From Takakia lepidozioides (lineage: Eukaryota; Plantae; Bryophyta): DNA of 64,000 nucleotides. The position numbers were made by a program, and so were the translations under genes. The notes beneath the pieces were generated by a model. That model was not told the DNA's origin. It ran no database searches and saw only the letters and a list, made by a program, of their open reading frames with translations. The stretch spans positions 54,932,001 through 54,996,000 of the forward strand of contig CM060732.1 of the NCBI GenBank assembly GCA_030704615.1, in the 5' to 3' direction. Below are positions 536 to 16,569 of the stretch, piece after piece (within the stretch, counting starts at the first letter, position 1; every line of letters begins with the position of its first letter).

Positions 536-2801
536 TTACCGCCACATCAGCATGCTGACATGACGCTCACGCCACGTCAGCATGTGTGCAGGCTCACGCC
601 ACGTCAGCTGGCGTGAGCGTACGCTCGCGCGCTCACGTGCAACGCTCACGCCATTGCGTCGTTGGTGTTGTAGGAAGGAAGCTGCCATGCGCTCAAAGTC
701 CTCCTCAGTCAATCCGAACAAGTGCTTTCTTCGCACCCCAAAGGTTGGATGTGCCATAGGCATATGTCTGAGGTCTTCAGGCCGTGGGTCATCCATGAGA
801 ATCAGCTGCACAAGTAGAGGCGGCATATTTTGGACGATTGTGGCTTCAATGGCAACAACAGAGGCGGCTTCTAGAACATGGTTGGCTTCCTCAATAGAAA
901 ACTCCATGGAATAATGAAAGGGTACAAATGACCACCGGCGGTCCGCAACAATCCGGTGGAGCTCATTATGCCAATCCAAATGGGGATTAATTTCTCTCAC
1001 CCTAAGCCGGGGAAGTGTGAGGTCTTCAGCTCCGGGTCGAATTACCGGTGATGGCGATCGCCAAACTGCAAAAAGCGTCGTGCTATGTGAGAGAAAGACA
1101 GTCTGCTGGTCAGTCTGCTGGTCCGCAGTCTATTGGATGACAGGACTTCCCATTGGCATGGGCTGCATGATGGGCTCCTGGAGAGGAGTCTGCAGGATGA
1201 TAGGCTGCTCGTTGGGAGTATGCTCCGTTGGAGTCTGCTGGATGACAAGCTGCTAAACGGGAGTTTGCTGGATGACGGCCTGCTGAATGGGAGTCTGCTG
1301 GATGGCAGACTCGGCTGTCCCAGACGCATTCCCCCCCGATACGTCTTGAATATGTAATGCCGCTATAGCAGCAGTTGACCCAGGATACTTCAATAATATG
1401 TACTCTCGCACGCGGTCCACTTCCGCACGCACTGCAGTCGCTTGTAAAGGAGCATCATTGTTAGGTATCCGCTAAGCCTGAATGGCCCTATGAATAGAAA
1501 CACGTTCATCCTGGTACACGGCAGAGAACTTGGACGTCAGGAACATGGACGTGGACTCTATATTCACCTCATGCAGCGGACTGGACTCACAGACCAGCAG
1601 ACTGACAGACGTAACGTGCGTACGTAGGGTGGAGGCAACTAGTAGACTGTACCAGTGGACTGGACCAGCGAACTGACAAACGGACTCAGTAAGTAATGCA
1701 GCGATATAAAACAGACTAACTGACGAGCGGAGTGAGCCAGCGGACTGAGGAGAGAACGCAGCGGACTGACCAGACTGAATAGGCAATGTGACCCCGATGA
1801 TGGACTCAAACAGCACAGAGAACATACTGGGCGGTCAGACTGACCATTACCTCCTCTACTTCATCATCATCTTCTTCATCTTCAAAGCTGTTCAACCAGT
1901 TCTGTTCCGCCTATCGGATGAATGTGCGTAGCAGGCCTGACTGGGCAACTTTGTAGAAATAACGGAAGAAGTCTGGATCCCCAATTGGTGGGCACACTGG
2001 TGGGAAAAGCCCAAAGTCAACGAGGCGCAATGTGCCAGGGCACACTGACCCTTCAGTGCTCTGTTGAGTTTTTGGTTTTGACCCTAAACCGATGGCATGG
2101 GTCGCGATATTTGTGTGAGTCTGCTGCCGAGTCTGGTCAGGCAAGTCAATGTCCACTGGACTTGTCACCCCTTCCAAGCCCTGAGCAGATTCACTTTCAG
2201 TATCAGTACCGATGGTGTGGGTTTGCCGCCCAGGACGGGGTTCAGTCTGTTGCGTGGATTTTGCCCTTGCCTTGCGAGCAGACCTTGCAGCCTTCTCCTT
2301 TTTTTGCCTCTCCTTTTTTTGGGCCCCATCACTCAGTTTACATTTTCTGGCAGCGTCCGGCGTTCCCTGCACTTGCAAATCCTCCATTGACGGGCCACCA
2401 GAATGGACGCCATACCGTGCGCGCACTTCGTCTAATTCCAAAGTGCGGGGGTCAAGTACTGATCCGCGCAAGCGCATTGTGGCCTCTTTGACAATCGTCA
2501 GTATCGGCCAAGGCTTGAAATCCCGTGGAATCATTGCAACAGTCTCCTTGCAACCCGTGTCAACACAATGCCGATTTAGTTGGATTTTGTCCTTGATAAC
2601 CTCTTCACAGAAGGGACAGAAGAGCTTGTCCTTCTGCCAATTTGAGTTTTTGGGCTTCCGCGCGCGGAGGTCTACAAATGCTTCCACTATTTTATGATCA
2701 AACTCGTCTGGCGAGTACCAGTACCTTCGCTCCTTCTTCAGTCTGGTTTGGTGCACAAAATCCACCCAATCCGCTCCACCTTTTTCACAAGCATCCTCCA
2801 T
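536..2801 (-). pseudogene. Degenerate spliced gene of unknown function, probably TE-borne (Zn-finger-like motif, acidic tract, QQT repeats, unknown downstream domain)
   Basis: ORF 1911-2801 has CPFC-x12-HC and an acceptor (ttctgcag) just before the ATG. The stop at 1911 is TAG and the frame continues into EDEEDDDEVEE then a GT donor. The QQT-repeat frame at ~1040-1330 runs into ORF 536-1000. About 300 bp (665-968) is closely similar to 29970-30268. Confidence 0.5.
555..655. repeat. Short GCTCACGCCACGTCAGC repeats at the point where the TE gene is truncated
   Basis: Direct and inverted copies of gctcacgcc/gccacgtcagc; they resemble subterminal repeats of another element. Confidence 0.45.
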
Positions 2802-3429
2802 CGCTGCAGAATGAAACGAGGGTGCAAGGACAATGAGCGACAGATAGAAGTCCTATGAAAAGACTCACCCTAAGCAAGAAGAGAACACAGAATGGAATGG
2901 AAACACCGCAGCAAGTGAGAACCTCACCAAGCCGATGAACTTCGAGTTGTTACGAAAGCGAGCGTGTTTGCGACGCTTCGCGGCTCACCGCGACTCTCCA
3001 CACCTGGGGAAGAACGGCTGTCTTTCGTTACGGTGATGGAAACGCAAAGAGGAAAACAAAACAGTGCAAAACAGTGCGAAGAAACAGGCGTGAAGAGAAT
3101 GGAGTCGATCGCACAGGGAACATGAGAAGAAAGTAGAAGTAGAAGGGGGAAAGCGGGCATGGCACTGCCAACGTGGCGCGATTTCACAGGCGCCAACTAT
3201 CCGCCGTCATCGCATTGAATACGTCCACCGAACGAACGCATCGTACTAAATTCATCCACGGTCCTTGCAAGTGCAGCAGACTCATTTCCCATTGGGCCGA
3301 GAGTCCAGCGGACCACCAGTCCAGCGGACTATTCGCTTTGCTGAGGCAAAGCGGCTTCATATTGGAGGCACTTCCCTGCCAGCGGAATGAAGACAAAAGA
3401 GAGTAAGGGGAGAACAGGAAAGTCGAACA

Positions 3430-3780
3430 CACCCATTGCGAACAGACTCGCGGCACAACAGACTGATGCATGCACAGTCCAACAGACTGATATCCATAGA
3501 GGAGAACTGTCCAGCAGATGGACGTTTCGCCAGAGTGGCGGGAGAACAAGCCAAAAGACTGACCGGAGGGAAAATAAGAAGTCAAACAGACTTAGTGCAA
3601 CAGACTTCCGACACAACAGATTGACAAATTCACAAGTGCGACAGACTGATATCCCAACAGACGGACTTCCAGCAGACTGCCTCCAAACTGACTGTTATGC
3701 ACGCGATAAGGGGAATATCTGGAGCACTGACGGGCTAGCGGACCCACTGTGAACAGACTCGCGACACAACAGACCTCAAA
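3430..3780 (+). repeat. Degenerate CAGACT/GGACT motif array
   Basis: Many (a)cagact motifs at short spacing; similar arrays at 1575-1790 and 4620-4790. Confidence 0.6.
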
Positions 3781-4619
3781 CATCCACGCGCATTTGCAGA
3801 TGCAATTGTCTCATCCTGGTCCGTCTCCTGGCAAATGCGACAATGTACCGATTCTGCACCTACTCCCGTCGTGGCTCAGACATCTGCATTCAGTAGGTGC
3901 GTGTGGATGTTTGAGGACCTTACGACTGGATGGTGTTCCGTGACGACTCAAATTGCTTTTTTGTGCTGCCATCCCTTATATAATACCATGTGGATCCATC
4001 ACAAAGCTGGGTTTCTTCAGATTCTCCACCCTTTTCCACAACTTATGCACGACGGATGCAAGCCGCTATACTTGGTCACATAAACAGTCCCATCGTCTGA
4101 TACAAAATCTGCAATACACGCCCCCATGTGCATACGCTTCCGCCATTTTCGCGCCCATGTTACCCATGGGTTCTTTTAACGAACTAAACTTGTGAAGGCT
4201 CTCATGAGGGATGCAGTACGAAGGGGCTAAACGTATCATGACGGATCACAAGCAGATGACGTTATCGATGACAGATGTCCGCATTTTCCATATTTATGAC
4301 ATAGAACCAAACCATAAAACAAAGGTTCCCGAAAGCACAACAAGAAGGCAAAAATAGTGGAAGCATATGCACGATGGTGGCTGTAGTGCCGAGACAGTCC
4401 TCTCATGTTCAAGCACACGCTTCATCATCATCATGAACATCGCGCGCAAAAGAGGAACAGTCGCGTGCATGGAAACGCCTACCGCAACATCAGACAACAA
4501 ACAGCCGTCAAAAGAGAGCGGTCGGGATTTGGTGGGAAGATCATTGCAATTTTCGCAGCCCTAAAAATGGAGGGCTCGGATGGGTTATGGGAATGGACGG
4601 TGGCGATCCTGCGCCGTCA

Positions 4620-5893: not shown

Positions 5894-7854
5894 CGGATGT
5901 GGTATACTCCCCCTTCCATTGGGCAGTGTCCCATTTCTATGCCTTCATGGCGAGGTTATTGTGAAAGAGGTTTGTAGTGTGAATATGTGGTAACTGTTTG
6001 CAGCTGTGCTTTTTGGCTCTATCTTTTGATGAATGTACATCTAGATGAATGTCCGTTTGGATGTAGTTTTGGAGTATTGGATGAAGACGTTCATCCGATT
6101 TCATCCGCCTTGCCCTAAATTGGCGGATTATGGAGTGCGGCGTGCTGAGTGAAGCACCGAGGGTGGTGCACAACGAGCTGCTGACACTCAGTATTTCGGA
6201 GCAGACATAGGCCTGCAAGCTTTAGCTTTCGGCTGCTAGTTACTTCTCTGCTCCTTGTCGCTTAGTTAATATCCTGCAATGGAGGCGTATGCAGCTTTCT
6301 AGCTTGGTATTGATGTACTTGTCGGCATTGGGAGTAGCAGGTGTAGTAATTCCACAGGCAAGTGGAGTAGGGGACGTAAGGGAGAATTCGGCATCTATGT
6401 GGTGGCTTCTCGGTTTTTGGAGATAGAGTGTGTGGCTAGAGGTGGTGAACTCATAGAATTCTGGAGATGGAGTGAGTGAGAGGTAGTTGGTGGTGAAGTT
6501 GTTGTGTTGAGGCAGCAATGCTTTAAGATGAGCACTTATTCATAGATTTTGGGGAGGTGATTTGGAGCTGATGAATGACTAAGAGACCACGCATTTCTGG
6601 TTGCTACCCTGTCTAAAGTCCATTTGGGTACTAACTCGCATCATGCACTAATAGTACTGATTTTCCAGTAAGTGCATTGGTCTTGGTGTTTGTTTATCAT
6701 GCCAACCTTCTAGGGTAAACTGACTGCTAGCTGAGTGGGTAGTTTAGTTGGTTGGGAATTCATGATTAAAGGGTTGCATTGATGGATAGAGCACACTGAT
6801 TTACTAGGCTGCATTGAGGGTTTATCCTTGGCACATTCATGAGAGGCTAGGATGCATGCATGAGTCCAGTGTTGTTTACTTGATTCTTGTGATGCAACAT
6901 TCAGCATAGCTCTGGCTCGACAGTTGCAGTGTATGGATTCCGCCCTTGGCATTTGAGAGGTAAAATGAGAGATAAAGCCGGATGGGCATTCGTGTAGTTC
7001 GGATCTACTATTTATGAAGGGAGATTGTAAAAAACCAGTAAGTGACTTCTTCCCATGGGCGATGCCCCCCCCCCCGAGTACGATTGTGAAGGTGCAGATG
7101 GACCTCAATCTTCATGCGTAATCACATGTCATACCACGGGTTTTTGAAACTAGTTGAACACCCGCCTATGTCTTCCCTTTTGCTGCGGCGTGGGTGGGGA
7201 TGTATAACTACTCTGATAATCTAGTGTTAACCCTTAAGCGCCCATTCGACCCGTTTTCGGCCGTTGGTTTTGGTTTTTCCCCTCTGTTTTTCTCGGATTT
7301 GAACCGATTAACCTGATTTTTGGAGGGTAGGATGCCAGCCACATGGCAGTCAGGATTCCAATGCGCGATTAGGTTTTTTTTTGGGTTAGGGTTGCAATTT
7401 TTGGCTGCGCAGGAGGTGGGGTCTGCTTCTGCAGCAATTTTGGCTTGCTCCCACGTTTTCAGCGTCGTCTCTCTCCTTCCCGCGCTTTGCCTTGTGCTGT
7501 GATCTCGTCTGTTGTGGCGTTCGCGCGTGTTCCATACTTTGTTGCAGGTTGCCGTTGCAGATGCCTTGACAGGTTGTCGTTGGTGGTCTGCTCCGATTGC
7601 ATCTTCCATTATCTCTTTCTCTTTCAGTTGAGGAAACTTGGAAATTGTGCATCGCTATAGAGACTGAGCCATAGCTGTGAGAGAGGATGGGCCGGCTTTG
7701 CATTGATACTCAGGGTGCGCATTCAAGGCAATGTTCATTGTTTGATACCTGAGCTAGACTATGCGCAGGTAGGGCATCGTGTAGCTCATCTTTGTGTTTA
7801 TCCTTGTGTGCATATGCAAATTGGTGGATGAATGTTGAAGCTACATAGTATAAG

Positions 7855-8238
7855 ATGGGTTTGGGTGTGTTGCCTCCCCCTACACCTGCGCATTTGGAGA
7901 CTCAAGCTGCATCGATTGCCAAGTGGGCACGCTCACTGGGCGCATCAACCGAGCAAGTCGAGCGGATTGTCGGGTGTCTGAATGAGGACTACCTCTTGTG
8001 TTTGAAGAGACCTGCTCGTGTGCGTTGGCCTGGATTTCCACAGCCCTCCAACTTTCGTTACTTGTTTAGGCGCCATTGTGCAGAGATTTTGGGTTGGGTA
8101 GATCGCAAGGAGGAAGGAGACCCCCTTGGGTTCAGCGCAGAGGTCAACGACATTTTGAGGCTCGAGGTTTGGCCTGACTTCCAGACGTCTTCTGCCAGCC
8201 ACGATGAGGCTCAAACAACTGGCCAGGGAGAGAGGTAA
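7855..8238 (+). CDS. piggyBac upstream ORF1 (127 aa), probably coding exon 1 of the transposase
   Basis: Clear homolog at 12418-12804 (GCLNEDYL, NFRY, WVDRKEEGDP, VWPDF); both end in AG|GTAA. Confidence 0.75.
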   Translation: MGLGVLPPPTPAHLETQAASIAKWARSLGASTEQVERIVGCLNEDYLLCLKRPARVRWPGFPQPSNFRYLFRRHCAEILGWVDRKEEGDPLGFSAEVNDILRLEVWPDFQTSSASHDEAQTTGQGER

Positions 8239-8304
8239 TCGTATTGAACCCTCTTTTGATTTCATGAGTGAGGAGATGGGCAATTCGACCTACTCCTTGT
8301 GCAA

Positions 8305-10316
8305 CTCTCAAAATCCGCTATGTGATCCTGCTGGTCACTCCCAAACTATGGAGGACATAGGGATTTTGGGATCCACAGTGAAGGTGGCAGTGGCTGAACT
8401 GCACCTTCAGGATGTGGCATCGTCTAGCAATGCCCACGAATTTGGATATGGCACTGTGGTAGACAAGACATGGGACATCCTGAATGGTACAAAAAATTAT
8501 ACTGTCTCTTTTTTTGGTGTCCTTGGTGTTCATGTGGTATCGTCACAGTCCTGTGTTGTGTGTAATCTTGATGATTCAATGTTGTGCACTATCCCTGAGC
8601 TCTTGGGGTTGGATTCTGAAGCTGAATTGCCTGAGGGGGAAGTAGATGATAGTGAATCAGATTCTGATTGTGACTATAATCCAGAAGATGATGACCTTGT
8701 TGACATCGACAATCCTGACTTGATGGACTACTGTGTTGACACGGGGAATCCAACGCGTGAGGTGGGATTATATGATTTGCCGCCCAATTGGGAGTAGTGG
8801 GGTCCTGCTGAGTTGTTTGGTGATGACATGTAGAACTCCTCTGCTACTGAATTGCCAGACATTACATGGTTAGGTGGGGATTCGGGTCCTCGTTTGCCTT
8901 TTGGAGATTCAGCAAATCCAGTTGATTTTTTCAATTTGTTTTGGCCACTATCGGTCATGCGCCGAATTTGCAGCATGACCAACTTGTATGCCAGGACAGA
9001 AAACCAGAATGGAAACCTGAAAGGAGGTAGATGGTGGTACCCTATCACCATCCGTGAATTGAAGGCTTGGCTTGCTGTTCACATGCTCATGGGAATCAAA
9101 AAATTGCCTAGTACTAGATTGTATTGGAAAGCCAACAATGCCTTCTTCAATTGCCCTTCCATCATGCGCATTATGTCCCGCAACCGATGGGAGGCAATTA
9201 TGAGGTGCCTCCACCTTGTTGACAACAAGGATGTATGCACTATTGACACTGACCCTGCTTTTGATAAGTTAGCTAAAACCAGGTGGTTGCTACATGCACT
9301 AAATGGTTTGTATGCCACCTACATGAGCCCCGAGCAGAATTTGACTGTGGATGAGCAAATGGTGAAATACAAGGGCAAATATGCCTGAATCCAGCAATAC
9401 CTGAGCAAGAAGCCTGTGCAGTGGGGTCTGAAGGTGTGGTGTTTGTGTGGTGCATGTTCCAAATATGTTCAGAAGTTAGAGGTTTACCTTGGGAAGGATG
9501 ATGGGAATGATATGACCCATGGTAGTGGATATGGCGTGGTGACAAGGTTACTAGAAGGATTTGAGGGTAAGGGCCATATTGTAATGATGGATAATTTTTT
9601 CAGTAGCCCCATCATGTTCTATGATTTGGCAGCAAAACAGATCTATGCTACTGGCACGGTAAAAACCTCCCGAGTGGGTTTTCCTACGTGCCTTGATTTG
9701 GGGAAGAAGGGTGAGAGAGGTAGGCTGGAATATCGTGTTCACATAAGTGGCAAAGTAGCCGCTATTGCCTGGATGGATGCCAAGTTGGTGACCATGATTT
9801 CCACTGCCATTTCCCCTGTCGGTCCTGATTGCTTCATACAAAGATGGCACAAAGGGGCAAGACGTGATGTGCCTACCTCCCCTATTGTGGTTCATTACCA
9901 GCAGCATATGCAGGGAGTGGATGTTCAGGATCAGCTACGGGGTTACTACTCTGTTCAGACCAGGGACCATAAATGGTGGCACCGCTTGTACTTTCATGGA
10001 GTTGACACTTCTTTGGTGAATGCTTACATATTGTACCTGTGTTTTATGAGGGGAAAGGGCCACATTTCTCTTAGCCACATGCTTTTCAATTTGGAGGTTG
10101 CAAAGGGACTAAATTGTGGGGTGGGTTCCTCCCATGAGAACAGTAATGCCAGGGGCAGATGTGCCCAACCCGGGGTCTGTGCATTTCTCCCTCAAGACTA
10201 GTAGGAGGAGGAAGTGTGTTCAGTGCGGTATGCGTCAAAGGTATTTTTGTCACGCGTGTGGAGATGTGTATATGTGCCTTGGAGGATGCTTTGTCAAGAG
10301 CCATAGCCTTCTCTGA
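8305..10316 (+). pseudogene. piggyBac DDD transposase with C-terminal Cys-rich domain
   Basis: ORFs 8204-8797, 8852-9388 and 9416-10201 share one frame, broken by TAG 8795, TAG 8831 and TGA 9386. Motifs LTVDEQM, MMDNFFSS, MQGVDVQDQ, KWWHRLY. A frameshift near 10115 leads to CVQC..CHAC..C..C..H. Confidence 0.93.
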
Positions 10317-10735: not shown

Positions 10736-10975
10736 CATAAGGGTGGAGACTCCTTCCCTCCCTGGGGAGGAGTCTCCCCCTTGTGTTCATGTGTGAGTTG
10801 CCAATTGGGGCAAGTTAGTGGGTTCAACTCCCACTCACACAATTCGGCGTGTAAATGTGGGTTCATCTCTAGTTTTTCTGAGTCTGATTTGATGCTAGTG
10901 TTGGCCACATGTTGGTCTTTCTTTGTGTGAGCTGCCAGTTGGGGCAGGCCACTGGGTTTAATTCCCACTCACACA
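10736..10975 (+). ncRNA. Putative structured RNA: long hairpin plus two anticodon-less tRNA-like elements
   Basis: Stem of ~22 bp at 10736-10785. tRNA-like folds at 10790-10841 and 10924-10975, each with a 7-bp acceptor stem, a D-like arm and a T arm. Confidence 0.5.
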
Positions 10976-11684
10976 TTTTGACCCCCCTTACTTTGACCAG
11001 GTGTAAATCAGAAAATATGAATCCATTTTTTGCATTCTATGGCTCATCAGAATGCCAATGTGCTGGACAACACCTGTAAGCAGGATGAGATCCTGCAGAT
11101 TTCATCCCGTCAGTGAAAATTGCAAATTCCTCCAATTTCCCTTATTGTCTTGGGAGGGGCCCAAAAAATGGGCCCCACACTCAACGGTGGCGTTTCTCGG
11201 ATTTTCGCCTGATTGGCCTGCAAATTTACCGGTGTCTGGAAGGGGTAGGTATGAGCATAATGTCTGGTCAATTTTCCCAAAAACTTTTTTTTCGCTGAGA
11301 TATTCTCATTTTTCTGAGCTGGGGTCCACTTTTTTCAAAAAGTCAACATTGGGCACTGGGCGCTTAAGGGTTAATGTCCAAGGTTTATGTTATAGCCCCT
11401 TTCTTTCACACCAGAGGTTATTTTCTCCCCTCACTATTTAAGGGGCCTGATTTCTGAGCTGTCGTTCCCAGGTGTTTTCTATTTATTAGAATAAAATTAA
11501 TAATAATAATAACTTATGTGAGGACAGTTGAATCTCCCACAATTCTCATAGTAAAAAGGGCCGGAAAAGAAATGAAAAGAACAAAGAAAATAAATAAAAG
11601 TTAAGTTTATTTAATATCCAGTGTATTAGATAGCCTACTGCTCAACACACAGCCCATCAAGGGGCCAATGGATGGTTAAACGCA

Positions 11685-11770
11685 CATGCTGAAGGATTGA
11701 ACCCAGGATCACCCAGGTTATGCATAGGCAAGGCACAAATACCCAACCACTAGGCTACCTGCTCAAGAGG
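11685..11770 (-). mobile_element. tRNA-derived SINE head
   Basis: Minus strand has A box GGTAGCCTAGTGGTT and B box GGGTTCAATCC, with an AT-rich tract downstream. Related B-box fragments at 31340-31410. Confidence 0.55.
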
Positions 11771-11814
11771 AATAAAGAATGAATGTACTGTTTTTGGGGC
11801 AATTTCTGCATTAA

Positions 11815-13032
11815 CCCTTAAACGCCCAGTAGCCCGTTTTGGGCCTTTGCAATAACTTCACAGGATCTTAGCCAATTGTTTGAGTTTTGGATATGTTATG
11901 CCCAGCCACCTGGGCTAATCTGAACCGTTGGGCGATTTTCCCTGATCAAGGTTAGGGTTCCGGAATTGCTGCGAGAGTGGCAGGGGGTCAGCTTCCGCCA
12001 TTTTGCTTCTCTCTCCCAAACACTGTGCTCTGGGTCCCGCGCTTTTTGAGTTCCTCGCGCGAGTTGGAGGGTGCTTGCAGGTGGCCGTTTGGATTCCTTG
12101 CAGGTTGCCGTTGCATTTCCTTGCTCTTGTCTCCTTCTATAACTGAAGCTCCCGCCGTCGCTGCATCAGGAAGTTCTTAGCATTCAATGCGTTGTTGGCT
12201 CATTGCGGCTGGTATGACACCTCTCTTCTATTGCCTGTCATCAAGCTTTGTTTCTTCATGTATGTTGTAGATGCGAGCTTCTTCTTGCATTGAAGGCTTT
12301 GCTTCATTCCTGTAGGCTTGCAGGCAGAGGAACTTAGGGAGACAAGTTGCCAAGATTCCCTGTTGTCATTGAAGGAGAAAGAAGGCCCGTTACTGGTGAC
12401 TATATAGGAGAGGAAACATGGGTTCTGCAGACATGCCTCCAGCAGCTCCTGCGCATTTGCTAGAAGAGTCTCTTGTTATTGGCAATTGGGCTCGCGCTTT
12501 GGGCGCCTCTCCAGAGCAAGTCGCCCAATTGATTGGGTGTTTGAATGAGGATTATCTTACGTGCTTGAAGAGGCCCAAGCGGGTGAAGTGGCCTGAATTT
12601 CCAAAACCAGCCAATTTTCGGTACATATTTTGTCGTCAGGCTGCGGAGATTCTCGAGTGGGTTGATCGTAAAGAGGAAGGTGATCCACATGGCTTTTCTC
12701 CTGAGGTAAATGAGTGTTTGAGGCTATCTGTGTGGCCTGATTTTGATGGATCCTCATCTGCCACCAACGATGAGACTGAAGGCAGTAGCAAAGTCCAGAG
12801 GTAAGAACGATTCTGGGCAGACTTGATGACATTGCGAGTTCAATTTCTGGTTTTGATTCGGGTCTTGCATATTCTCTGCTTAGGTCTCAAGTTGCTAGAG
12901 ATGTCGCAGGTCATAGTCAATCTTGGGAAGATCTAGGGGTGCTGGGATCCACTATAAAGGTTGCAATGAACCATTTGTACCTGCCTAACATGGCTTCTTC
13001 TTCCAACGTCCAAGAATTTGGTTATTGTACTA
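11815..13032 (+). mobile_element. Second piggyBac, diverged subfamily, 3'-truncated
   Basis: TTAA at 11811-11814, then CCCTTAAACGCCCAGT. Shares left-end motifs with element 1 (TTGCAGGTTGCCGTTGCA). Carries the ORF1 homolog and the start of exon 2 (GHSQSWEDLGVLGSTIKVA..EFGY). No right TIR seen. Confidence 0.9.
12418..12804 (+). CDS. piggyBac ORF1 homolog (128 aa), exon 1
   Basis: Roughly 60% identical by eye to 7855-8238. The GT-AG intron 12801-12883 joins it in frame to the transposase N-terminal segment. Confidence 0.75.
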   Translation: MGSADMPPAAPAHLLEESLVIGNWARALGASPEQVAQLIGCLNEDYLTCLKRPKRVKWPEFPKPANFRYIFCRQAAEILEWVDRKEEGDPHGFSPEVNECLRLSVWPDFDGSSSATNDETEGSSKVQR

Positions 13033-13619
13033 TAGGGCTTGTATTGCCCTATAGTTGACTATTTTCATTCTCTTTGTGGTTGATAGTATGCAGGAGGGAT
13101 CCATTCTGTTTTCATGTTGGAATTTCACCATGTAATGAAGATTTTAAATCATTTAATTCACTTTCATTTTAAATAATAATATTAAAAATAATACCATTTA
13201 AAAAAAAATTCCAAGGCTGCAATCTCCCTGTTCTTTTAAATATTAAATAAAAACTAAAAAATAAAATATGAACATTAAAAATATAAACTATTTCGGAAAA
13301 CAATCTTGATGACACGTGACATCACTTTTGCTCAAACCAGAACACGTGGCAGTATACGACACGACATTCTTTATCCATATTTTCACCACGTGTAAAGATC
13401 CGTAGTCATATATGCTAGTCATATATTTTGTCTGTGTGCCATATGTCACATCTCAAGTGCAACAAGTGTCCCGCTAACAACTCTCCATGTAGACATCCCT
13501 GTAGTCATATGAGCGAGTCATGTAGTCACCACGTGTGAAATCTGTCATAGCACACGTGCCCCTCTTCCTTCATATCCCTTTTTCTTTCCGCCCGCTGCCA
13601 CCCCCTTTGTACATCGACA

Positions 13620-15290
13620 GGAAGTACATCACCCATGTTTGTATTTGCAATGCGTGTGTGATCCTGGCAGCCCTGGAAAAGGGCAAAGAGGTCCATGTTG
13701 ACATTGTCAAAGCTGGAATCGTACCAGATGTTGTTCTGAACACTGCTCTGATGAACATGTATGTGAAATTTGAGAGCATTGAGGATGCAAAGGGAGTGTT
13801 GGACAATAGGGTAGTTGCAGCCTACGGTGGACCAAAATGAGACACACCATGAGTCCCTAAAAGTACATAAAGGGGGATGTGGCGTATCCTCAACCATTGG
13901 ATTCGCTTCAATTTACGATCTCAAACGTCTATTATTGACCATTAAAGACTTTATTTTCAAATCGCGATAGTTCTAGATCACAATAGTTTTTTTTCAAATT
14001 TGACCTTGATTTACCCCATGGGTCTACCCTTGGTCTATTTATTTAATGAGGTAGTGTTGATATTTCAAAGAATTTCATACGTAAAGGACTTTACGAAAAT
14101 AGTTATTTTGAAGGCTCAAAATAGTACATAAAGTTTATTTTACTTAATATTTTTTAGTGGGTGTTTTCATTCTAAATTCTTTATCCCTCATAGCACATTT
14201 GGTCAAGTCCCTTTTTCTAATTTTTTATGAATCATGCTTTTAAAAAGTCCATAACGACATTTTATATGGAGTATAACAAATCTTTATGGACTTGCTCAAA
14301 AGTCCATAATTTCTAACTTTTTGCTTTTTTGGTTATGAGACTTGGAATAGGGGATAGCTTAGTCCTTTTTTACTATCAACATGGAGTATGATAATTCACA
14401 ACTAATCAAGGTAAAAAAAAAATAGTGTTGTGACAACATTTTTGGTCCACAGTATGCAGCTGCCTAATATGACCGAACGAGATGTGGTGTCTTGGACTGC
14501 GATGATCACAGCTCATGCACAGCAAGGGCGCGGGATGGAGGCTTTGGCAACCTATGAGCAAATGATGAGGGAAGGGGTGAAGCCCGACCAGATCATCCCA
14601 GGTTAGGTTTGCAAGGTGTGTGCGAGCCTGGCAGCGCTGGATAAGGGCAAGGAAGTCCATGGGGACATTGTCAAAGCTGGAATTTTACCAGATGTCATCT
14701 TGAATAGTACCCTGGTGGACATGTATGCTAAATGTGGGTGCATTGAGGATGCAAAGGGAATGTTCGACCTAATGGCTGAACGCAATGTGGTGTCTTGGAG
14801 CGCAATGATTGCAGGATATGCACAGCATGGGTGCGGGATGGAGGCTTTGGAGACCTATGAGCAAATGGTTTGGGAAGGGGTGAAGCCCAACCACATCACC
14901 TTTATTTGTGTTTGCAATGCGTGTGCAAGCCTAGCAGCCCTGGAGAAGGGCAAAGAGGTCCATGGTGATATCATCAAAGCGGGAATTGAACCAGAACACA
15001 ACAATACCCTCGTGGACATGTATGCCAATTGTGGGTGCATTGAGGATGCAAAGGGAGTGTTCAATAATATGACTGAAGAAGATGTGGTGTCTTGTAACGC
15101 CATGATCGCAGGATATGCACAACTTGGGCGCGGGATGGAGGCTTTGGAGACTTATGAGCAAATGTTTAGAGAAGGGGTGAAGCCCAACCACATAACGTTT
15201 GTTTGCGTTTGCAATTCGTGTGCAAGCCTGGCAGCCCTCGAAAATGGCAAAGAGGTCCATGGTGCCATCATCAAAGCTGAAATTGTGGGA
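13620..15290 (+). pseudogene. PLS-class PPR gene fragment interrupted by a TE
   Basis: Repeats such as [40 protein letters not shown], very similar to the PPR-DYW gene at 45451. No E/DYW domain; frameshifts and an insertion at 13808-14465. Confidence 0.85.
13825..14452. mobile_element. Tc1/mariner-like non-autonomous element (MITE)
   Basis: TA|CGGTGGACCAAAATG ... CATTTTTGGTCCACAG|TA with an AT-rich interior. Confidence 0.7.
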
Positions 15291-16569
15291 CAACCGCTAT
15301 CCAAGGTTGTGCCTTTTTCTTAATGTACAATGTGAAGAAGTTTGTCCATCCTCCATGGATCATGAGACAAGGTCGGGGACAATTGGTGAAGGCACATTCT
15401 TGGCCAATGTGTGCAGACATCGATTCTGTAGCCAGGATGACCTTCACATTCATGGCAGCATGCTCCGCATATCCCTTGTGCTTTCTCTGTTTTCTGATCG
15501 AGCCAAAATCCTGTCGTCATGCAGCAGATTCCTGTGGAGCGGACATGGACATTCAGCTTGGCAGTGCCGAGCTTGAGACCCTTGCAAGTGATGGTTATGA
15601 AGTCTCCCCAATATCCAGGAAATCGAAGAAGGGTACAAAAGGTATCACTTGCCTTACTTTTTTGCAGTTCTTACACTGTGTACCTTATTATCTTCTTTCT
15701 CATGCAAGAAAAATTACACCCAATTTCGCAGAATCCTCATCAACCCCTGAAACATTGGAAATTTCTCATTTGTTTCTCGTTTTGTAATTGAATTAGAGAA
15801 AGACACAGAGTGAGGGAGCTTAATTTTTTTGTGTGCCTACTCTACCATTCCCCCAACACCCTCAATTAGGAGGTGATGAAGATGTCTTAAGTGGTGTTTG
15901 CATGCAGGCCTATCACTAAGAATATAAGGGATTTCTCTCGATGTCATGTCATATCCTCCCCAATTGTGGGGCAACAGGTTTCCAAAGGTGAGGCTTTGTT
16001 CATTGTTACCCAATCTTCTTTCAGTCCAAGGGAAAGCAGAACAGAGATTTTTCTGGGTGGAGCAGGCAAGTTGCAGTGATCGATAGTAACTAACATTTGT
16101 TACCATGCCACTTGTTAGGAGGCAGTAATGCCAAAATCATTATGTTCAAAATGAGTCTTGTTGTTTGAAGCGATGATTGTAGAGCTTGGTGGTTGTAGCC
16201 TGCTTTATATGTGGTTGTGGTTGAAGCTACGGGTCCTCTGCTGCCCAGTCGTGCTTTCCTCAGAAAACTTGAATATTGCCAGATTTTGCACCTGAGCGCA
16301 GGAAGGAGGTACGTTAGATTGAGCACCCTCCGTGGGTATAAGATGGAGCACAGCCAGGTGATGGTTCAATATTCGACATGTAGTCAATGGAGCTCAGGGG
16401 AGCAAAAACCACATGTACTTTTATGATGATCCTAGGCTGAAAGATACCCACTTGCAAGGATTGTATTGGTCCAGTCTATCCTCAAGTAGGTGACTGATAG
16501 TCTGTCATCAGATAAGAAGCATGTCCTTGTCAAGAGGTCTTTCGTACGGAGTGTAGTCTGATATATTTT

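Follow-up and report, generated by a model that had tools for sequence, protein, structure and literature searches.

A small helical protein gene that probably overlaps, and is not spliced onto, the transposase gene of two piggyBac copies in Takakia lepidozioides

When a piggyBac transposon carries a second conserved open reading frame (ORF) directly ahead of its transposase, do the two make one protein or two? The question is raised by a 64,000-nucleotide (nt) stretch of the moss Takakia lepidozioides (GenBank assembly GCA_030704615.1, contig CM060732.1, positions 54,932,001 to 54,996,000 of the forward strand; hereafter the window, numbered from its first letter), which holds two piggyBac elements on its + strand, element 1 full-length but decayed and element 2 cut short. 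In both, a small ORF (ORF1) precedes the transposase frame (ORF2), and its stop codon lies within AG^GTAA, a sequence resembling a splice donor (the caret marks the putative junction). An earlier interpretation based on the letters alone (the sequence-only reading) had proposed that an intron beginning here fuses ORF1 to the transposase, that its retention yields ORF1 as a short isoform, and that transposase activity is thereby controlled by splicing. The ORFs are present as it described, with 127 amino acids in element 1 and 128 in element 2; several lines of evidence speak against the splicing that was to join them to the transposase. We consider it fairly probable that the elements, both dead, are copies of a piggyBac transposon with two genes, a helper gene overlapping an unspliced transposase gene.

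The assignment to piggyBac rests on the ends and on the catalytic domain. A TTAA target-site duplication and short terminal inverted repeats starting with CCC are present, and the terminal pattern occurs three times in the window where chance would predict 0.11. The element 1 transposase matches PF13843 (DDE_Tnp_1_7) in two pieces, with E 1.4e-31 for 8852-9385 (profile positions 1-140) and E 3e-38 for 9416-10198 (profile positions 153-349). Neither copy is intact: in-frame stops interrupt the element 1 transposase at 8795, 8834 and about 9389, a frameshift precedes its putative cysteine-rich C-terminus, and homology of element 2 to element 1 stops near 13040. Both copies in the window are therefore dead, one decayed at full length and the other truncated.

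ORF1 itself has clearly been under selection. The sequence-only reading had suggested comparing substitution rates between its two copies: the proteins are 62% identical, with a ratio of nonsynonymous to synonymous substitution rates (dN/dS, or omega) of 0.16 at dS of about 1.7, indicating purifying selection. A profile built from these two copies matches 223 proteins at E<=0.001 in a search of 1.84 billion representatives. The relatives have in common the motifs W..GA...Q...I.GLL and R(Y/F)LFRR(H/Q)..IL.W..R.EG.P.GF and a final (W/F)P(D/E), the nearly invariant columns being W24, R68, L79, W81 and E87, with no cysteine among them. With the relatives' alignment as input, AlphaFold predicts an all-helical, five-helix domain (predicted local distance difference test, pLDDT, 87; predicted template modelling score, pTM, 0.76). 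No Pfam model was matched by the window ORF1s or by 149 relatives, and no convincing structural neighbour of the model emerged from Foldseek (best E 0.9), VIA (best Z 5.5) or Atlas (template modelling score, TM, <0.45). Word-index protein searches with ORF1 and with a 197-amino-acid N-terminal piece of ORF2 gave no match, and of two metagenome scans for relatives the first returned none and the second only 2 loci. In the relatives' contigs that were fetched or read as gene tables, many of them unrelated, ORF1 directly precedes a piggyBac transposase. The 150 relatives listed (of the 223) include no ORF1-DDE fusion and, with the exception of one repeat protein, are all 87-405 amino acids long.

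Could ORF1 nevertheless be functionless, an ORF that arose by chance or decay? Both window copies do lie in dead elements, as such an origin would have it, but the constraint at so high a dS, the number of relatives, the confident structure model and the recurrent piggyBac neighborhood make this scarcely credible, and it was rejected. Judging from alignment and structure model together, ORF1 is a true domain, conserved, folded and associated with piggyBac, and represents an uncharacterised but widespread family; on this point, a novel conserved domain, the sequence-only reading was correct. Two relatives are peculiar in their own right. The repeat protein, P0121 (1030 amino acids), consists of at least nine tandem repeats, each matching the first ORF1 helix only (profile positions 9-38, ...WLETAQWARTLGQSTRQ...). 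At the P0009 locus, an ORF1 homologue is followed by an overlapping 1056-amino-acid ORF with no Pfam hit on record, which would be a partner gene of another kind if it is not a highly divergent transposase.

Where, then, does the transposase begin? Element 1 has an ATG at 8204, 35 nt before the ORF1 stop, which opens MRLKQLARERGN in a frame that is +1 to that of ORF1 and continues uninterrupted through the supposed intron to 8794; the equivalent ATG of element 2, at 12770 in the ORF1 tail, opens MRLKAVAKSRGK. A +1-frame ATG stands 2-10 codons past the WPD motif, which ends the ORF1 domain, in 10 of the 12 related loci having ORF2, and the two exceptions (L001 and L018) have methionines slightly upstream of the usual position. 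The peptides that follow it in relatives resemble M(V/A)RL..AR (MVRLLEEARSAARQ, MARLRADARVRATQ, MSQLRAAVRKKNK, MAEVFKAVQRALLW); their codons differ synonymously (CGT/AGG, CTG/CTC, AAG/AAA, TTG/CTG), and it is therefore the peptide itself that is conserved. Over the 12 codons of overlap in the two window copies, the +1 frame has an omega of 0.20 and the ORF1 frame one of 0.75, with the same pattern in L001. In L001, the closest relative for which DNA was available, ORF2 is one unbroken frame that leads from RRLKELAR to the DDE domain. Two other loci, known from gene tables, have long ORF2s overlapping ORF1: in one, ORF1 at 672-1229 is followed in the +1 frame by a 931-amino-acid DDE_Tnp_1_7 ORF2 at 1222-4017, and in the other, ORF1 at 379-1170 is overlapped in the +1 frame by a 1056-amino-acid ORF at 1130-4300. 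Among relatives, ORF2 begins anywhere from about 1 nt past the ORF1 stop to about 370 nt before it, and ORF1 tails range from 0 to 125 codons. As far as comparison of these sequences goes, the transposase probably has its own ATG inside the ORF1 tail, with ORF1 a separate gene that overlaps the transposase start and not a front part spliced onto it. A further idea, that an "HMGA" motif in long ORF1 tails is the same as a "VPVMGE" motif of ORF2, the frame switch having moved between lineages, received no support from phmmer and was dropped.

The putative splice sites deserve closer scrutiny, since those of element 2 are attractive. The ORF1 stop lies within gagAG^GTAAtc in element 1 (TAA at 8236-8238) and within cagAG^GTAAga in element 2. 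As the sequence-only reading calculated, removal of the 83 nt at 12801-12883 of element 2 (...ttctctgcttAG^G) joins the ORF1 frame, in phase 2, to TCT CAA GTT... (SQVARDVAGHSQSWEDLGVLGSTIKVAM), which aligns with SQNPLCDPAGHSQTMEDIGILGSTVKVAV of element 1. It had also noted, correctly, that the homologous acceptor of element 1 reads AA (tgcAA^C, 8303-8304) and that removal of the corresponding 70 nt would preserve the phase; the borders are thus GT..AG in element 2 and GT..AA in element 1. Nor are the sites conserved among relatives: no GT is found at the ORF1 stop in L001, L002, L004 or L006 (four of five relatives inspected), and L018 has CG^GTGA there, but the acceptor found is out of phase with it. 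In-frame GT..AG pairs free of stops are numerous (50 in element 2, 40 in element 1), as the downstream frame stays open over a long way upstream. What looks like a donor GT is the glycine codon of R-G-(N/K) in the transposase frame, and the element 2 "acceptor" falls inside Y-S-L-L-R-S-Q, which aligns with Y-S-L-C-N-S-Q of element 1 via three synonymous changes. On this comparison, the attractive sites are probably a by-product of two overlapping reading frames.

The two-gene arrangement would work as follows. Gene 1, ORF1, would encode a small helical accessory protein, which from its conservation beside the transposase we infer to be a helper or regulator of transposition. Gene 2 would start at its own +1-frame ATG a few codons past the ORF1 domain, with a 35-base overlap in this case; its frame, unspliced, would cross first a linker under weak constraint, then the conserved beta-rich module and then an acidic linker before entering the DDE domain. 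The AG^GTAA would then be no more than the place where the ORF1 TAA overlies the transposase codons Arg-Gly-(Asn/Lys), and the apparent intron of element 2 would be a stretch of linker with a net one-base insertion or deletion. Ribosomes may get to ORF2 by leaky scanning, by reinitiating once ORF1 has been translated, or because ORF2 has a transcript of its own; the overlap among relatives, from about 1 nt past the stop to about 370 nt before it, makes all three possible. ORF1 alone would be a product, and indeed the normal one, so that the short isoform of the sequence-only reading survives, though its origin by intron retention is unlikely.

Several observations weigh against this reading. 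The transposase frame of element 2 stops 18 codons past its ATG, and the proposed GT..AG, entered from the ORF1 frame, restores it exactly; the pair looks good too: the donor reads AG^GTAAGA, and the sequence between, 58% AT, offers a pyrimidine tract and, 28 nt ahead of the AG, a TTGAT. Between the copies, this stretch of 70-83 nt cannot be aligned; it differs in length by 13 nt and has an omega of about 0.9, all as an intron would look, and relatives do carry introns in the region. The selection test in the overlap covers just 12 codons, and in a longer overlap of 111 codons (L012 versus L013) dN/dS values of 0.59 and 0.69 do not separate the frames. Translation of a downstream overlapping ORF is also hard to account for in a eukaryote. 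Finally, both sequencing runs that were found, small and tentatively labelled RNA, are probably low-depth DNA, so that splicing is neither shown nor excluded by them: their contigs are collinear over ORF1 and both putative introns (7763-8514 and 12564-13024) at a depth of 3-5, with non-coding flanks covered too, and contain no joint at 8234/8305 or 12800/12884. For the frame break of element 2, a net +1 nt directly after GGTAA (GGTAA-T-CGTATT versus GGTAAGAACG-ATT) in a poorly constrained linker of a truncated dead copy would be a fitting explanation; the linker has in-frame insertions and deletions too.

If the break is instead a real intron, with its donor at the ORF1 stop and its acceptor before SQ..GHSQ, ORF1 would be fused to the transposase in the plant lineage and retention would leave ORF1 alone. 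Such a model draws on the consensus-like, correctly phased sites of element 2, on the matching donor and phase of element 1, on the lack of constraint and the length difference that is not a multiple of three, and on the ability of the family, seen in L018, to carry introns in the 5' part of the transposase. It has to contend with the conserved +1 ATG and peptide upstream of the "donor", in the frame that is the selected one in the overlap; with AA in place of AG in element 1; with the donor context missing in most of the relatives inspected; with the absence of ORF1-DDE fusions from the listed relatives; with the unbroken ORF2 of L001 and the long overlapping ORF2s of two other loci; with the 50 in-frame pairs that chance provides in element 2; and with contigs collinear over both sites, though probably DNA. 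We regard it as unlikely, and splicing of ORF1 onto the transposase was not upheld. Alternatively, a fusion could be made alongside ORF1 alone if ribosomes underwent a programmed +1 frameshift where the ORF1 domain nears its end. In its favor, every informative locus but the broken element 2 has ORF2 in the frame +1 to ORF1, and two genomic relatives, P0067 and P0123, have both parts in one frame. These two fusions, however, occur in decayed copies and are due to insertions or deletions shortly past the ORF2 ATG whose positions differ; they therefore look like decay and not design; no common slippery or shift site was noticed, although no dedicated search was made; the conserved methionine with which the +1 peptide begins suggests initiation there; and ORF1 tails vary from 0 to 125 codons. 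A frameshift is thus quite improbable. In a broader version, the coupling of ORF1 and the transposase would be deliberate, through splicing in the plant lineage or, throughout the family, through reinitiation or +1 frameshifting, with the helical domain either riding on the transposase or gating its synthesis; this too we think doubtful.

Introns as such appear, from the DNA of relatives, to exist in this clade, within ORF2 and not at the ORF1 stop. The metagenome relative L018 has an apparently true 269-nt intron at 1818-2086 (GATG^GTAAGC...tgtaatgcAG^CT, phase 1), which joins a 71-codon first transposase exon to a 697-amino-acid ORF, and L004 has a similar donor, GGAG^GTATGCCCCCG, about 77 codons past its ORF2 ATG. 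The single-frame arrangement of ORF1 domain and transposase N-terminus occurs in genomic contigs (P0123 in L008-L011, P0067 in L007); P0123, which is found again in 14 metagenome contigs, adjoins an intron-containing Skp1 gene.

The segment following the putative intron had been described as Tudor/PWWP-like. Its conservation is supported: window positions 8360-8584 align with L006, L012 and L013 (BLASTP E 1e-6 to L006, and multiple alignment), and similar stretches are visible in L014 and L018. Its fold is another matter. No match was found in Pfam (E<=10) or Atlas, the best PDB profile match (E 0.55) is to unrelated chains, and the five strands of an AlphaFold model made from the single sequence (8375-8565) come with a pLDDT of only 38. 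By its alignment this is a real conserved module of the transposase, predicted to be beta-rich and at most a candidate for a Tudor/PWWP-like fold.

Table 1. Coordinates of the features of the two piggyBac elements (positions in the window)
Feature	Position	Strand	Basis
Element 1, left end: TTAA target site and terminal inverted repeat CCCTTAAGCGCCC	7227-7243	+	pattern search
Element 1, ORF1, 127-amino-acid accessory protein: five-helix domain to WPD motif (codons to 8178), then 19-codon tail	7855-8238	+	
Element 1, overlap of ORF1 tail and transposase start: ATG 8204, +1 frame, MRLKQLARERGN	8204-8238	+	
Element 1, N-terminal part of transposase ORF2, open from its putative own ATG to the first decay stop (TAG 8795-8797)	8204-8797	+	
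Element 1, putative intron of the sequence-only reading: GTAAT...tgcAA, 70 nt, without AG; open in the ORF2 frame, poorly conserved (omega about 0.9)	8235-8304	+	
Element 1, beta-rich N-terminal module of transposase, conserved (the "Tudor/PWWP-like" segment)	8360-8584	+	
Element 1, acidic linker with conserved E(V/L)GLYD motif at its end	8585-8794	+	
Element 1, piggyBac DDE domain, in two pieces (8852-9385 and 9416-10198) with an in-frame stop between	8852-10198	+	PF13843 DDE_Tnp_1_7
Element 1, putative cysteine-rich C-terminal region of transposase (Cys/His pattern), in a shifted frame (frameshift near 10150-10200)	10116-10316	+	direct reading, RKCVQCG...FCHACG...CLGGCF..H
Element 1, right end: inverted copy of terminal repeat CCCTTAAGCGCCC and TTAA	11358-11374	-	pattern search
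Element 2, left end: TTAA and CCCTTAAACGCCC	11811-11827	+	pattern search
Element 2, ORF1, 128 amino acids	12418-12804	+	
Element 2, putative transposase start: ATG 12770, MRLKAVAKSRGK, stop after 18 codons; net +1 nt versus element 1 directly after GGTAA	12770-12826	+	
Element 2, putative intron of the sequence-only reading: GTAAGA...ctgcttAG, 83 nt; open in the downstream frame too	12801-12883	+	
Element 2, N-terminal remnant of transposase, truncated at its end (omega 0.27)	12884-13040	+	

Some features of the surrounding DNA can be added. Upstream of ORF1 (7300-7850 and 11880-12410), short blocks are common to both elements (GCCAGCCAC, GGTTAGGGTT, TCCCGCGCTTT, TTGCAGGTTGCCGTTGCA), which could be sub-terminal or promoter motifs. 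The spacer between the elements (11337-11930) has a word depth of 200-1370 in both sequencing runs versus 3-6 for the elements, and is therefore a very high-copy repeat in the genome. In run X1, the 3' part of element 1 (10746-11336) has 5-10 times the depth of the coding part; it contains tRNA-like modules. Downstream, at 14400-15330, are tandem PLS-type pentatricopeptide repeats (DMYAKCG..IEDAKGVF..), consistent with a land-plant genome rich in RNA-editing factors.

How unusual is such an arrangement for piggyBac? Canonical piggyBac elements have one ORF, whose product has a short acidic N-terminus. The elements described here share with that of Trichoplusia ni and with the PGBD proteins the TTAA target, the CCC...GGG ends, the DDE_Tnp_1_7 core and, on a direct reading of the Cys/His pattern, a putative cysteine-rich C-terminus; they differ in the extra upstream, overlapping gene and in the conserved beta-rich N-terminal module of the transposase. 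Overlapping-ORF coupling is familiar from the M2-1/M2-2 mRNA of respiratory syncytial virus (RSV) and from bicistronic LINE-1 elements. The likeness is that the second ORF starts a few tens of bases before the stop of the first, and by analogy would suggest reinitiation after termination; the variation of the overlap among relatives, from -1 to about 370 nt, argues against a fixed coupling signal.

The nearest published parallel is offered by piggyBac families with a second, "KolX-like" protein (piggyBac-2_GrCh_2p and piggyBac-14_PI_2p; Kojima, 2022; PMC9587614); our searches of the literature on plant or bryophyte piggyBac and on two-ORF piggyBac found nothing beyond it. As here, a small extra protein accompanies a piggyBac element; its C-terminal ..RH..LG...R......IR..WPD.. 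in the published supplement sequences resembles, by eye only, RRH..ILGW..R......ILR..WPD of ORF1, and of the seven ballast cysteines most are missing in both. Gene anatomy (overlap, frame or start) is not given in the paper. KolX of Kolobok (Kol0) transposons is likewise an accessory protein of a TTAA-targeting DNA transposon. The sequence-only reading had seen a likeness of ORF1 to P2X7 C-terminal-like domains, and this by-eye impression agrees with the published remark on a few piggyBac families, but no computed test recovered P2X7: Pfam P2RX7_C was matched neither by the window ORF1s nor by 149 relatives (E<=0.01-1), the ORF1 profile found no P2X7 chain in the PDB at E<=10, P2X7 was not among the structural matches shown (Foldseek, VIA, and Atlas by features and by shape), and the set of seven zinc-binding cysteines of the P2X7 ballast is not conserved in the ORF1 alignment. 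Distant kinship of ORF1 to KolX and the P2X7 ballast, by way of the piggyBac 2p proteins, is possible as a lead from the literature, unconfirmed by these computed tests.

In part, then, the outcome is a correction: the claim of a transposase whose activity is controlled by splicing should not be carried forward on the present basis without RNA evidence. The larger point concerns the family. As a tool for gene delivery piggyBac is of major importance, and descriptions usually present it as a system of one protein. Here is a widespread piggyBac lineage with a conserved accessory protein, confidently folded in its predicted model and without a match in these fold searches, together with an extra N-terminal module of the transposase, and it could supply candidate regulators or targeting factors for transposition. 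If the reading in which ORF1 and transposase are coupled were true, this would be a piggyBac with built-in dosage or targeting control.

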